Notes: generated by a model not told the origin, from the letters alone. A DNA stretch of 64,000 nt from Setoptus koraiensis (GCA_048013815.1 CM106585.1:9858001-9922000); one strand, 5' to 3'; counted from the stretch's first letter, positions 24,531 through 30,167 are shown. A program made the numbers and translations.

Positions 24531-27500
24531 ATGAAGTGTTCATCGACAATGATGGCCAGTTTGGCCCTATTGTCTATGTCGATTGTTTGCGTAATAATGG
24601 CCAATGGAGCGCCACAAGAATCGCACAGTAGAGTGGTTCAGAAGACAACCATACAACGCCAGCCAAGAATGTTAGAATTTAAAAGTTCAGGCGACGATGG
24701 TGAACTGCAACAGAAATTGAAAGAAGCTAACAGTAGCCATGTTGTTAGTAGCCCATACGCAAGCATAAATGGCGAACAAATCGAAGTACCCCAATTGACT
24801 GAGCAAAATATTGCCAGCAATGGTGGTGCTGTGAGCAAGACAATGGACAATTTTGCCTTATCACTGAAAAGTGTCACCGACGAAGACGAATGCGATTGCG
24901 ATCCAAAGGACAGCGCCAAAGGTGTGCGCGAAGTTATTGATGCCACATCAAAACTCAGCCAAGACCTATTGCGATGTTTGCTGGATTCGGTGAGATCGCG
25001 AATCGGCCGACAAGAGGCAACATTGATTAGAGCTCTAGTCAAAGAATCAATGGATGCATTGTCGCGTTCTGTGGACGGCATTTACGCAATTTGGAAGGAC
25101 GATCAGAAGAACGAGCCCACTCAGGCCGTACAATCAATCGTCGACGGTATGATGTCGGTGTTGAATCAATTTTCGTCACATCTTGCGTCTGCTATTATAT
25201 CAGCGCCAGAAAAAAGAATCGAAACTATCTCTTGGGTGCTACGTCAACTAACGCAACTAGTCGCCAACACTTCGTCGTCGTTAGCCGATGACGTTGATAA
25301 GGGTCTCAACGAGAAACAATTGGACCAGGTGTTGAAATTGGCAACTGATTTAGCTCAGCCATTGGCTTCGCAAGTCTTAGCAAATCTAGTCAACGGTACA
25401 GCGCGCATTCCATACATAAATGGTCAGATGTTGCGCTTCATTGAGGACTCGCAAAAAATAAGCCGTGGCTGCCTGAATACCAAAGCGATTCGTGTTGATC
25501 TGCCATCAGCAGTGTTGAAATCGCTAGCCAAGGGCTTGCAATCGATCACAATCAAGGTGGCCAGTAGCGACCCAAATGCCGCGTCAACAGCCCACCGAGC
25601 GGCCACGAGCAGCTTCTTGTTTAGTTTGATACAACAGGTGGAGAATATGATTCGCCAGACTAACTCACTTGAGCTGAGGCAAATAACACCCAAGTGTCGC
25701 CAAATGGCCCGAGAGGCTGTGGCGAATTCAGTGGTCATAGTAGAGCAAGTGATTGCCAACGTGTTGCCGGAATTGAAGACAGGAAGCCAGAGTCAAGTGC
25801 AAGTGAGCCAGGGAAAGCTGGCTGGACAAATGGCGTTGGATTTCGCTGGTATATTGCCGATATTAGGCGATGATCTAACTCAGTTCAGTGAACGCGAAGA
25901 ACGTCTGGCAAACATCACAATGTTGATCTATCAACAATTGGAGGTACTCAAACGTGTGGCCAAAAACGATCAAGCCATCAGCAAGAATTCTCTCGAGGGC
26001 ACCAAGGCAACCATTCAATTATTGGTCGATGTAGCCAGATTGGAGGTGAGATACGTACAAATTGCCGTTGAACGTGTCCACCAATCGGATGAAAGAGGCT
26101 CGAGACTTCACCTTATCAACAAGGTTGTCCGCTCTATTATTGAGTCAGTAGCCAAATCGGGTAGAACAGAAGTCAATGCCGATAATACACCATTGACCAA
26201 AATGATTGATGACATATCAGAGGCACTGAGCAGAACGATTGATGGTATTAGCCAGAATACTCTCAAGGATAAACCTAGGAGTGCAGGTGACGTTCTCTTT
26301 GAGGTATTCTATTCAATGATGGAAACTGAACGTAAGCTCATATCTGACGCCCAAACTCCACCGAGAATCGGCCTCAGTCAATCGGTGCCAACCGATGCCA
26401 TATTTGGATTGGCCAATTCGATTAGAACAGCAGTGGATTGGTCCAACGCCTTGACCAGATCATCTGGATTAGAGCCTTCAATTCAGGACGCTCTCATTGA
26501 TCTGATAATCAAGGTAGTGGTTAGAACTTCGGACAGTTTGAATGGCAACGAGAAACAAAACAAAGATCTAGATTCCAGTTTAAGTGGCGATCTAAGTAGT
26601 GTCTTGGATGAATTGAAGAAGATCCGGGAACAGACTAAATCGTCATCAGGAACTAAGACAACAACACAAGCATACATAGATTACTATAGTTACTATGACT
26701 ACTCGGACAAGACACCAACGAGTGGTCTAACAAACCTTGTCATAGCCGCAAACAATGTAGACGAGATTCTTGCATACATTCTAGGATTCAACGTGAAATT
26801 GACGACTAGTGTAACACTCAGAAATTCAAAGACAATAGTAGATGTGATAATAGTGCTTCTGGAGGATTGTAGTCGCACACCTCAGGTGAACGATGATGGA
26901 TCAATAAGTTTGCCTTCGGGAGTGCTTACAACACCTAGACCAACACCTACCGAGGCACCAACAACCACAAGTGCACCAACAACCACGAGTGCACCAACAA
27001 CCACAAAATCGCCATCAACCACGGGAGAGCCAGGCCAGCCAGGACATCCTGGTCATCCAGGCAGACCAGGACACCCAGGTCACCCAGGTCATAGTAGCTC
27101 ATCAACAACTCCATCAAGCAGCGGTGCTGAACCAGGAGAGCCAGGGCAGCCAGGACATCCTGGTCATCCAGGCAGACCAGGACACCCAGGTCACCCAGGT
27201 CATAGTAGCTCATCAACAACTCCATCAAGCAACGGTGCTGAACCAGGAGAGCCAGGGCAGCCAGGCAAGCCCGGTCATCCAGGCAAACCAGGTCACCCAG
27301 GTCGACCCAGGTACTGGTAGCGTCAACCCCTCAAGCAACGTCACCCGAGAGCCGGAGTCAGGCAGCCAGGTCACCCAGGTCATGGTAGCCCATCAACCAC
27401 TCCTTCAAGCAACGGTGCTGAACCCGGAGAGCCAGGAGAGCCAGGCAAACCAGGTCACCCAGGCAGACCAGGTCACCCAGGTCATGGTAGCCCATCAACC

Positions 27501-30167
27501 ACTCCCTCAAGCAGCGGTGCTGAACCAGGAGAGCCAGGGCAGCCAGGCAAGCCCGGTCATCCAGGTCGACCAGGACACCCAGGTCACCCGGGTACTGGTA
27601 GTTCGTCAACCACTCCTTCAAGCAGCGGTGCTGAACCAGGAGAGCCAGGGCAGCCAGGCAGGCCCGGTCATCCAGGTCGACCAGGACACCCAGGTCACCC
27701 GGGTACTGGTAGTTCGTCAACCACTCCTTCAAGCAACGGTGCTGAACCCGGAGAGCCAGGGCAGCCAGGCAAACCAGGTCATCCAGGTCACCCAAGTCAC
27801 CCAGGTCATAGTAGCCCATCAACCACTCCTTCAAGCAGCGGTGCTGAACCTGGAGAGCCAGGCACACCCGGTCATCCAGGCAGACCAGGTCACCCAGGTC
27901 ATAGTAGCCCATCAACGACCCCATCGAGCAGCGGATCAGAGCCAGGAAAGCCAGGTCACCAAGGACACTCAGGTTTCCCAGGTTTCCCTGGTCTTCCAGG
28001 TCATGGTAGCCCATCAACAACCCCATCAAGCAGCGGATCAGAGCCAGGAGAGCCAGGCACGCCCGGTCATCCAGGCAGACCAGGACACCCAGGACACCCA
28101 GGTCATGGTAGCCCATCAACCACTCCCTCAAGCAGCGGTGCTGAACCAGGAGAGCCAGGGCAGCCAGGCAAGCCCGGTCATCCAGGTCGACCAGGACACC
28201 CAGGTTACCCGGGTACTGGTAGTTCGTCAACCACTCCCTCAAGCAGCGGTGCTGAACCTGGAGAGCCGGGCACACCCGGTCACCCAGGCAGACCAGGTCA
28301 CCCAGGTCATAGTAGCCCATCAACGACCCCATCGAGCAGCGGATCAGAGCCAGGAAAGCCAGGCACGCCCGGTCATCCAGGCAGACCAGGGCACCCAGGT
28401 TTCCCTGGACACCCAGGTCATAGTAGCCCATCAACGACCCCATCGAGCAGCGGATCAGAGCCAGGTCAGCCAGGTCACCAAGGACACTCAGGTTTCCCAG
28501 GTTTCCCTGGTCTTCCAGGTCATGGTAGCCCATCAACAACCCCATCAAGCAGCGGATCAGAGCCAGGAGAGCCAGGCACGCCCGGTCATCCAGGCAGACC
28601 AGGGCATCCAGGAAGACCTGGACACCCAGGTCATGGTAGCCCATCAACCACTCCCTCAAGCAGCGGTGCTGAACCAGGAGAGCCAGGGCAGCCAGGCAAG
28701 CCCGGTCATCCAGGTCGACCAGGACACCCAGGTCACCCGGGTACTGGTAGTTCGTCAACCACTCCTTCAAGCAACGGTGCTGAACCCGGAGAGCCAGGAG
28801 AGCCAGGCAAACCAGGTCACCCAGGCAGACCAGGTCACCCAGGTCATGGTAGCCCATCAACCACTCCCTCAAGCAACGGTGCTGAACCCGGAGAGCCAGG
28901 AGAGCCAGGCAAACCAGGTCACCCAGGCAGACCAGGGCACCCAGGTTTCCCTGGACACCCAGGTCATAGTAGCCCATCAACGACCCCATCGAGCAGCGGA
29001 TCAGAGCCAGGTCAGCCAGGTCACCAAGGACACCCAGGTTCCCCAGGTTTCCCTGGTCTTCCAGGTCATGGTAGCCCATCAACAACGCCATCAAGCAGCG
29101 GATCAGAGCCAGGTCAGCCAGGTCACCAAGGACACCCAGGTTTCCCAGGTTTCCCTGGTCTTCCCGGTCTTGGTAGCGTTTCAACAACTCCATCAAGCAG
29201 CGGTACTGAACCAGGACGGCCAGGTCACCCAGGTCATGGTAGCTCATCAACACCATCAACAATTGGATCAGGCCCATCTGATGACGTCTCGACAACTCCA
29301 TCAAGCAGCGAATCAGAGCCGGGCAAGCCAGGTCATCCAGGTCGACCAGGCCATCCAGGTCATGGCAGCCAATCAACCACTCCCTCAAGCCGCGGGGCTG
29401 AACCCGGAGAGCAAGGAGAGCCAGGCACTCCCGGTCACCCAGGTCGACCAGGCCATCCAGGTCATGGCAGCCCATCAACAACACCATCGAGCAGCGGTGC
29501 TGAACCAGGAGAGCCAGGCAAGCCCGGTCATCCAGGTAGACCGGGACACCCAGGTTTGCCGGGTTTGCCGGGTTTGCCAGGTTTACCAGGTTTCCCAAGT
29601 CTTCCCGGTATTGGCGGTGCCACAACATCACCATCGAGCGGCGGTACCGAGCCAGGCAAGCCCGGTCATCCAGGTAGACCAGCACACCCCGGTTTGCCGG
29701 GTTTGCCAGGTTTGCCAGGTTTGCCAGGTTTACCAGGTTTCCCAAGTCTTCCTGGTATTGGCGGTGCCACAACATCACCATCGAATGGCGAATCAGAGCC
29801 TGGTAGGCCAACACACCCAGGAACCCCATCGGAACCAAATAAGCCAGTTCATTCGGGACACGACGTCAGGGAGGGTGGTGATTCCAACGATGACAATGAT
29901 ATAAATTACCTAGAAAAGGAGTCGCATTGCCCTAATGAGCGACTGAATGAGCTCCGAAGAATCATTCGTCTGCTTGTTGAAACATCATCTGGTTTTGTAT
30001 GCCATCAGACAGATAGAACTAAGATCAGACGTCAAGAGGAATTACTTTACGCGGACATACTCAGATCTTTGATTCGTCGTCAATCAAACGTGTGTGTAAG
30101 GTCGACCAAGACAAATTCAATCTTTCATCCGTTGAACATTCAGTCTAGATTGAATGTGCAAATTTGA
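24531..30167 (+). CDS. Giant secreted repeat protein: signal peptide, helical N-domain, ~25 His-rich (Gly-X-Pro)n/Ser-Thr repeats, Cys-containing C-domain (~1,860 aa)
   Basis: ORFs 24447-27320 and 29556-30167 are in the same frame. Reading that frame from 27363 gives uninterrupted GHPGHGSPSTTPSS... repeats. Only TAG 27318-27320 separates them. ATG 24531 gives MKCSSTMMASLALLSMSIVCVIMANG. Confidence 0.8.
27021..29850 (+). repeat. Coding tandem repeat, ~25 units of ~100-120 nt (consensus about GAEPGEPGQPGKPGHPGRPGHPGHPGTGSSSTTPSSS)
   Basis: Recurrent GGTGCTGAACCAGGAGAGCCAGG...GGTCACCCAGGTCAT...TCAACCACTCC units. FPG/LPG variants appear towards the 3' end. Confidence 0.95.

Follow-up and report, generated by a model that had tools for sequence, protein, structure and literature searches.

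A candidate secreted collagen-like block protein with His-rich repeats and two orphan end domains in an intron-poor eukaryotic genome

Gene layout and coding status

The window analysed here is a stretch of 64,000 nucleotides (nt) deposited under Setoptus koraiensis (GCA_048013815.1 CM106585.1:9858001-9922000), and the subject of this study is a gene on its plus strand which the original prediction had read as encoding a giant secreted, His-rich, collagen-like block protein. In frame 0 the gene runs from the ATG at 24531 to the stop codon at 30165-30167, with a TAG at 27318-27320 as the sole interruption, and its conceptual product has 1,877 residues, about 189 kDa when the leader is removed. 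The architecture that had been claimed, namely a signal peptide, a helix-like N-terminal domain (N-domain) of about 800 amino acids (aa) with a Cys-Asp-Cys motif, a Pro/Thr linker, a repeat core and a C-terminal domain (C-domain) with three Cys, was recovered in full and in place. The features are as follows.

24338..24345, plus strand: TATATAAA, candidate TATA box about 190 nt 5' of the ATG (direct sequence reading; putative role)
24531..24611, plus strand: start codon and predicted signal peptide, about aa 1-27 (sole hydrophobic segment; leader also in the relatives P0001 and P0003)
24612..26927, plus strand: orphan N-domain, predicted all-helical, about 770 aa with about 25 helices of 20-30 residues each (AlphaFold2 model and five relatives)
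24879..24911, plus strand: acidic Cys-Asp-Cys motif, aa 117-127 (kept in P0001 and P0003)
26928..27023, plus strand: Pro/Thr-rich, mucin-like linker (repeat finding and translation; Thr-Pro-Arg-Pro hinge common to P0001)
27024..27312, plus strand: repeat sub-array A, 2.6 copies of a 111-nt unit, 94% alike (Tandem Repeats Finder and translation)
27300..27365, plus strand: decayed partial unit where the two sub-arrays meet, carrying the gene's one in-frame stop, TAG at 27318-27320 (alignment to neighbouring units)
27359..29828, plus strand: repeat sub-array B, about 21 units of 31-40 aa, each Gly-X-Pro blocks plus a Ser/Thr spacer (translation, repeat finding and codon-position constraint)
29829..30167, plus strand: C-domain of 112 aa with three Cys, and stop codon (alignment with P0001 and the locus L002)
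30342..30347, plus strand: AATAAA, candidate polyadenylation signal about 175 nt past the stop (direct sequence reading; putative role)

A mechanical list of open reading frames (ORFs) gives the gene as two pieces, 24447-27320 and 29556-30167, because frame 0 holds no ATG, GTG or TTG over the 2.2 kb from the TAG to 29556; the suggestion that the ORF track hides the gene by splitting it was thus borne out. Over the whole protein a single hydrophobic segment was found, at aa 3-28 (Kyte-Doolittle, 19-residue window above 1.6), where AlphaFold2 also places an N-terminal helix, at low confidence, and therefore a signal peptide and secretion fit.

The coding status of the repeats was judged from the pattern of their variation. 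Among the units downstream of the TAG, variable columns fall at the three frame-0 codon positions as 20/17/50, and comparing codons pair by pair gives 429 synonymous and 339 non-synonymous differences in frame 0, against 66 to 712 and 111 to 623 in the shifted frames. Two alternative long ORFs over the repeats, one of 977 aa in the +1 frame and one of 826 aa on the minus strand, were considered and rejected, since the synonymous excess is confined to frame 0 and low-complexity DNA of this kind opens the other frames. Independent contigs from X2, a DNA run filed under a different organism label, show 11 differences to the N-domain, nine of them synonymous; a twelfth, in the core, is non-synonymous, so that nine of 12 are synonymous overall. 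Near-identical DNA of the locus recurs under three organism labels, and for this reason some of these labels are probably those of hosts. Horizontal transfer or contamination was also considered and rejected: the GC content of the N-domain (45%) is that of the window's genes, and the relatives described below all lie on intron-poor eukaryotic contigs, while the high GC content of the core follows from its amino-acid composition. On the evidence of family relatives, conserved motifs, third-position constraint and the synonymous bias in X2, the gene looks real and lineage-restricted.

Orphan end domains and their relatives

The N-domain (aa ~28-799) is rich in Ser, Leu, Val and Ala and carries the Cys-Asp-Cys at aa 121-123. 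Its AlphaFold2 model, built on an eight-sequence alignment, is wholly helical with about 25 helices, at a predicted local distance difference test score (pLDDT) of 65.5 and a predicted template-modelling (TM) score of 0.61. The C-domain has Cys at 1800, 1824 and 1855, which are 24 and 31 residues apart, and reads as two amphipathic helices with a conserved Cys after each of them. His is scarce in both, with 6 of 772 residues in the N-domain and 5 of 112 in the C-domain.

Neither end could be assigned to a described family. In Pfam, no family besides Collagen reached the cut-off and neither end domain was matched. Foldseek of the N-domain against PDB and the AlphaFold DB clusters gave generic ARM/HEAT-like solenoids only (E > 0.02, TM < 0.2), the ESM Atlas gave no meaningful match to it by features or by shape, and the wide VIA-align search returned helical bundles only, the best at Z 10.1, which is under the tool's informative level for helical folds. 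A profile search of PDB sequences was empty for the N-domain and at chance level only for the C-domain (E >= 0.035). By these searches both end domains are orphan, outside any Pfam, PDB or AlphaFold family, and the view of the protein as an undescribed secreted block protein, which a terminal match to a known family would have overturned, came through.

Relatives nevertheless exist. A phmmer search with the N-domain over 1.84 billion representative proteins found five (E = 2.8e-74 to 4.2e-20), which sit on four contigs (L001-L004), similarly intron-poor and eukaryotic. The features taken to define membership, a signal peptide followed by a helical domain of about 770 aa with Cys-Asp-Cys, were found, tblastn on the loci being run as well; the relatives share conserved blocks including the acidic Cys-Asp-Cys, and where the N-terminus is present it begins with a hydrophobic leader. 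A word-index homology search with the N-domain and the family alignment added nothing beyond P0003, a scan of Joint Genome Institute metagenomes with the conserved motifs gave 428 pattern matches and no relatives, and exact-sequence look-ups of the window proteins found none on record.

One relative, P0001, the 852-aa protein of L001, has 30% identity and consists of a leader, an N-domain and a C-terminal tail without any repeat core, the two domains being joined directly at a Thr-Pro-Arg-Pro hinge where the Pro/Thr linker of the window gene begins. Its AlphaFold2 model leaves the C-domain below a pLDDT of 50 and is uninformative on domain packing. At L002, on a metagenome contig of 60% GC with 36-43% identity to the window gene, the N-domain is followed by a basic stretch rich in Pro, then by Gly-X-Y runs, short, irregular and with some His, over about 1.2 kb, and last by the C-domain. 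The C-domain is recognisable in these two relatives' loci, weakly by BLASTP (E = 0.005) but co-linearly, and aligning it between the window gene, P0001 and L002 leaves an invariant Leu, an invariant Arg and two invariant Cys. In L004 the N-domain is followed by a Pro/Thr stretch, where the contig ends. By sequence comparison, then, the conserved entity is a leader, a helical domain and a small Cys tail, held by the window gene, P0001/L001, L002, L003 and L004, and the core is a lineage-specific expansion at the hinge, since P0001 joins the N- and C-domains without it and the cores differ between lineages.

Two irregularities were noted in the relatives' contigs. At L002 4400-6020 there are at least five reading-frame changes inside the collagen-like core, probably from mis-assembly of repeats, as expected from short reads. 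At L004 6-924 (in a 1,073-nt Logan contig) the equivalent of N-domain aa 158-277 is joined directly, with a frame change, to that of aa 593-790, possibly through faulty joining, possibly because the contig represents a splice form or a shorter paralogue.

The repeat core and its in-frame stop codon

The core comprises 966 aa, of which 24% are Pro, 24% Gly, 16% Ser, 8.5% His and 8.4% Thr. The proposed array of alternating Gly-X-Pro runs and Ser/Thr spacers is present, with slightly different dimensions: there are 24 runs rather than about 25, and they hold 5-10 Gly-X-Y triplets each rather than 5-9, for 174 triplets in total. Units are 31-40 aa long, with spacers of 10-13 Ser/Thr-rich residues between the runs, and form two sub-arrays, A at 27024-27312 with units 94% identical and B from 27359 with units about 73-75% identical. 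Over the 174 triplets the X position is taken by His 72 times, Glu 21, Arg 20, Leu 14, Lys 13, Gln 11, Phe 11 and Thr 10. Pro in the Y position of Gly-X-Pro is the substrate pattern of collagen prolyl 4-hydroxylase, and the assignment of that pattern to the core held up, Y being Pro in 147 of the 174 triplets (84%). The Pfam Collagen family (PF01391) matches the core at E = 1.6e-45 in nine stretches, which places it by sequence in the collagen triple-helix repeat family. Homology searches with the core returned compositional collagen matches only, mostly vertebrate collagen XXI.

Almost all blocks open with between one and three Glu and close on His in alternation with Lys/Arg; at the C-terminal end of the core, where Phe and Leu in X are mainly found, these two residues take the place of the Glu/His/Lys/Arg pattern. 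For the core as a whole, 51 Asp and Glu stand beside 46 Lys and Arg and 82 His, and since the acidic residues nearly balance Lys and Arg, the 82 His alone set the net charge, which is computed as +83 at pH 5, +36 at pH 6.5, +15 at pH 7 and -2.5 at pH 8. This switch fits assembly triggered by pH or metal, and the idea of such assembly, part of the original prediction, agrees with the computed charges.

The same composition may be read in another way, which we regard as possible though we lean away from it: the core would never be triple-helical, being instead an extended, disordered Pro-rich chain with heavy O-glycosylation, a glycoprotein comparable to mucins or salivary proline-rich proteins, that serves as coat, lubricant, glue or binder of plant polyphenols in saliva. 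Mammalian salivary proline-rich proteins and histatins bind plant polyphenols, and the genome here appears to resemble that of a plant-feeding eriophyoid-type mite. The runs have only 5-10 triplets and are broken by the 10-13-residue Ser/Thr spacers, the content of Pro, Ser and Thr (24%, 16% and 8%) and the Pro/Thr linker suit such a chain, and the Gly-X-Y runs of L002 are shorter still and less regular. However, a disordered chain has no need for strict Gly periodicity over 174 triplets or for Pro in 84% of the Y positions, and the regular acidic-to-basic polarity of the blocks suggests an ordered, in-register association.

The TAG falls within about 55 nt of sequence in which a spacer and a block start can be aligned, with several small indels that sum to zero. 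This scar is the exact junction of the young sub-array A and the older sub-array B. GT..AG pairs able to remove the TAG do occur, with candidate introns of 51 nt, or of 69 nt, the latter restoring a perfect unit; both, however, have a GC content of 61-64% and a poor donor, and CAGGT, which supplies both AG and GT, occurs 71 times in the core. The standard for this genome is set by the two genuine introns of the window:

41527-41691, plus strand: genuine spliceosomal intron of 165 nt in the Atrophin-like gene
49832-49928, minus strand: genuine spliceosomal intron of 97 nt in the SIR2-family gene

Both are AT-rich (the 165-nt one has 23% GC), with GTTAGT/GTAAGT donors and pyrimidine-rich acceptors. 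The evidence for a small intron is weak because CAGGT is so frequent in the core and the candidates are unlike these two.

If the TAG is real and not bypassed, the gene would, in this strain, be a recent pseudogene, or would give a 929-aa product with the N-domain and three units, without most of the core and the C-domain. The in-frame stop inside a unit with several indels agrees with this, as does a scar placed exactly between young and older units in the manner of an unequal-exchange breakpoint; the rescuing GT..AG pairs are uninformative, and the introns of one well-studied eriophyoid mite are reported to be relatively long (PMC7738191). On the other side, decay is limited to about 55 nt, the 2.8 kb downstream remain in frame with their synonymous excess, the C-domain is intact with the family Cys, and repeat arrays are prone to assembly error. 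A truncation, if there is one, must be recent, since the scar alone shows decay, and for the locus as a whole we judge this outcome unlikely.

A further reading takes the locus as right in kind and ascribes the scar, the TAG and the unit count to a collapsed or mis-joined array. The scar sits at the join of the sub-arrays; the X2 contigs leave 26764-27354 uncovered, the TAG site included, and one of them joins 28097 to 29145, skipping 1047 nt (349 codons, in frame) of the array, which is either a polymorphism of array length between strains or a de Bruijn collapse. From this gap and skip, both the scar and the number of units may depend on the assembly or be polymorphic, and the frame changes of the L002 core show how poorly such arrays assemble. 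However, the indels at the scar are not simple homopolymer errors, and they sum to zero with the frame restored; we consider this reading of the locus improbable. When the TAG is considered by itself, a question separate from the standing of these whole-locus readings, an assembly error and a real recent truncation are each quite possible, to the same degree and short of probable, a small intron is doubtful, and some other cause is more doubtful still.

Genomic setting and a proposed extracellular material

The window is gene-dense, with about 17 genes, and nearly free of introns; two ABCA genes of 1,350 aa and an Atrophin-like exon of 1,100 aa appear as single ORFs, and neuropeptide-type G-protein-coupled receptors (GPCRs), a caspase and a sirtuin are also present. 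Eriophyoid mites have intron-poor genomes of 32-35 Mb, one of them assembled as two chromosomes, and their males leave spermatophores on the plant surface (PMC11879100, PMC7738191). With its compact, intron-poor layout, the genome studied here may well be that of an eriophyoid-type mite. Directly 3' of the collagen-like gene are two orphan ORFs on the plus strand, 31009-31488 (159 aa) and 31625-32206 (about 150 aa from an internal Met), with hydrophobic N-terminal segments and no Pfam match, which may encode further secreted proteins. Upstream, on the minus strand, lies a 436-aa ORF at 20180-21490 that Pfam does not match; it has several hydrophobic stretches, and a divergent membrane protein of chemoreceptor-like type is a possible product. 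A run of N at about 7570-8080, a gap or masked sequence within the GPCR array, gives rise to spurious 'X' ORFs in all frames, and a long CAA/CAG (poly-Gln/His) tract at 43584-43901 in the Atrophin-like ORF explains the composition anomaly at 42-44 kb.

The explanation that we prefer for the collagen-like gene, with moderate confidence, is a real, lineage-restricted secreted protein of about 190 kDa whose short triple-helical, His-rich blocks would form an extracellular material switched by pH or metal. Hydroxylated blocks would make short triple-helical rods joined by flexible, probably O-glycosylated hinges, and one of the terminal domains would bring the chains into register. Since it is usually a C-terminal oligomerisation domain that nucleates the folding of a collagen, the C-domain, with its helices and Cys, is the likelier trimerising candidate. 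At acidic pH the polycationic core would keep the protein soluble; near or above neutrality, or once His binds Zn, Cu or Ni or reacts with quinones, the protein would condense or cross-link. Any of these changes would let the acidic starts of blocks pair with the basic ends of others, and the Leu/Phe blocks towards the C-terminus would make the material more cohesive by hydrophobic association. The outcome would be a solid or sticky structural or adhesive material outside the cell.

Several points weigh against this proposal. For a stable triple helix, runs of only 5-10 triplets are short, and host-guest data do not mark His as a stabilising residue in X. Hydroxylation, glycosylation and trimerisation are putative steps, and the C-domain is modelled at low confidence only. 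A real, unremoved TAG at 27318 would cut the protein after three units, and the repeat number is possibly wrong or polymorphic, in view of the 1047-nt skip inside the array. Finally, three poly(A)/oligo-dT RNA runs, chosen by the species label common to the DNA runs that hold the locus, gave zero reads there, although the organism may be absent from those runs. Three small runs, X11 and X13 (possibly RNA) and X12 (of uncertain kind), hold 6-9% of the sampled N-domain words, which may represent low-level transcript.

The proposed protein resembles several known systems in part. In mussel byssus, preCols leave an acidic gland and are then cross-linked through their His in a manner that depends on pH and metal, and preCol-D, -NG and -P are likewise secreted block copolymers of collagen sequence and His. 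However, in these the collagen domain is single, long and uninterrupted, its flanks resemble silk or elastin, and His is concentrated in the terminal domains, whereas the window protein has 24 blocks with 10 triplets in the longest run, His in X within the triplets, and large orphan ends. The earlier likening of its His blocks to those of preCols is weakened by their position, and no sequence homology to mussel preCols was found. Cnidarian minicollagens share the very short collagen segment, Pro-rich flanks and Cys-containing cross-linking ends, but they are small, with a single collagen segment and six-Cys end domains, in contrast to about 190 kDa, 24 segments and a three-Cys tail; neither the Cys positions nor Pfam show a minicollagen six-Cys domain in the window protein.

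Spidroins and the glycoproteins of spider aggregate glue have the same succession of N-domain, long repeat core and small C-domain, and spider aggregate-glue proteins combine Gly/Pro-rich repeats with O-glycosylated Thr. The analogy to spidroins and fibroins that had been drawn survives as one of layout only: the repeat chemistry of spidroins differs, Spidroin_N and the spidroin C-terminal families have no Pfam match at E <= 1, and P0001 has the same end domains without a core, so the ends are a family of their own and, given this core-less relative, the window protein's termini are not silk-specific assembly switches. As for collagens proper, the best core matches, vertebrate fibril-associated collagens with interrupted triple helices (FACIT) such as collagen XXI, share Gly-X-Y periodicity (E to 1.7e-20, 29-40% identity) but carry VWA and laminin-G/TSPN domains and lack the His-rich unit, the Ser/Thr spacers and these end domains; the likeness to them and to other collagens is, by sequence, compositional only. 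The Col_cuticle_N, C4/NC1 and COLFI domains of nematode cuticle collagen, collagen IV and fibrillar collagens had no Pfam match at E <= 1, and the mucin/peritrophin modules CBM14 and VWD were not found by Pfam, despite the Pro/Thr linker and the Ser/Thr spacers. A parallel to the blocks themselves lies in designed collagen-mimetic peptides, whose short triple-helical segments assemble through staggered charge pairing of acidic and basic ends and, when they bear His, on addition of metal. Their acidic-to-basic polarity is that of each natural block here, but they are synthetic 30-36-mers, whereas the window protein, known here from its sequence, would be a natural chain of 24 such blocks.

Spermatophore, egg attachment, salivary and cuticular matrix are all candidate materials with none singled out, and nothing in the analysis picks the material among the silk or web, egg glue, spermatophore stalk and stylet sheath named at the outset. 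A more specific version of the proposal, which we offer only tentatively, is an unknown class of arthropod fibre or adhesive, made of about 24 mini-collagen segments with charge set by His only and trimerised by a Cys-bearing helical domain, that would serve plant-parasitic mites as spermatophore stalk or as egg or feeding attachment and would turn from soluble to solid on a rise in pH or uptake of metal after secretion. Collagen-like repeats, His-based switches and block-copolymer secreted proteins are each known already. For the combination of 24 mini-collagen blocks with X = His, regular Ser/Thr hinges, a His-only net charge and two orphan end domains, no counterpart was found in the databases and literature searched, and nothing relevant was found in the literature on eriophyoid or mite collagen-like proteins.

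With regard to the family, the comparison shows a large repeat core arising at a hinge, with no core in P0001, irregular Gly-X-Y runs at L002 and a regular 24-block array in the window gene. If the protein is expressed and assembles in the proposed way, it would be a natural, genetically encoded, segmented collagen switchable by pH or metal, a synthetic design for which no natural counterpart was found in the databases and literature searched. If this is true, the structures that eriophyoid-type mites secrete would also become accessible at the molecular level for the first time, in animals whose protein-level biology has hardly been explored.

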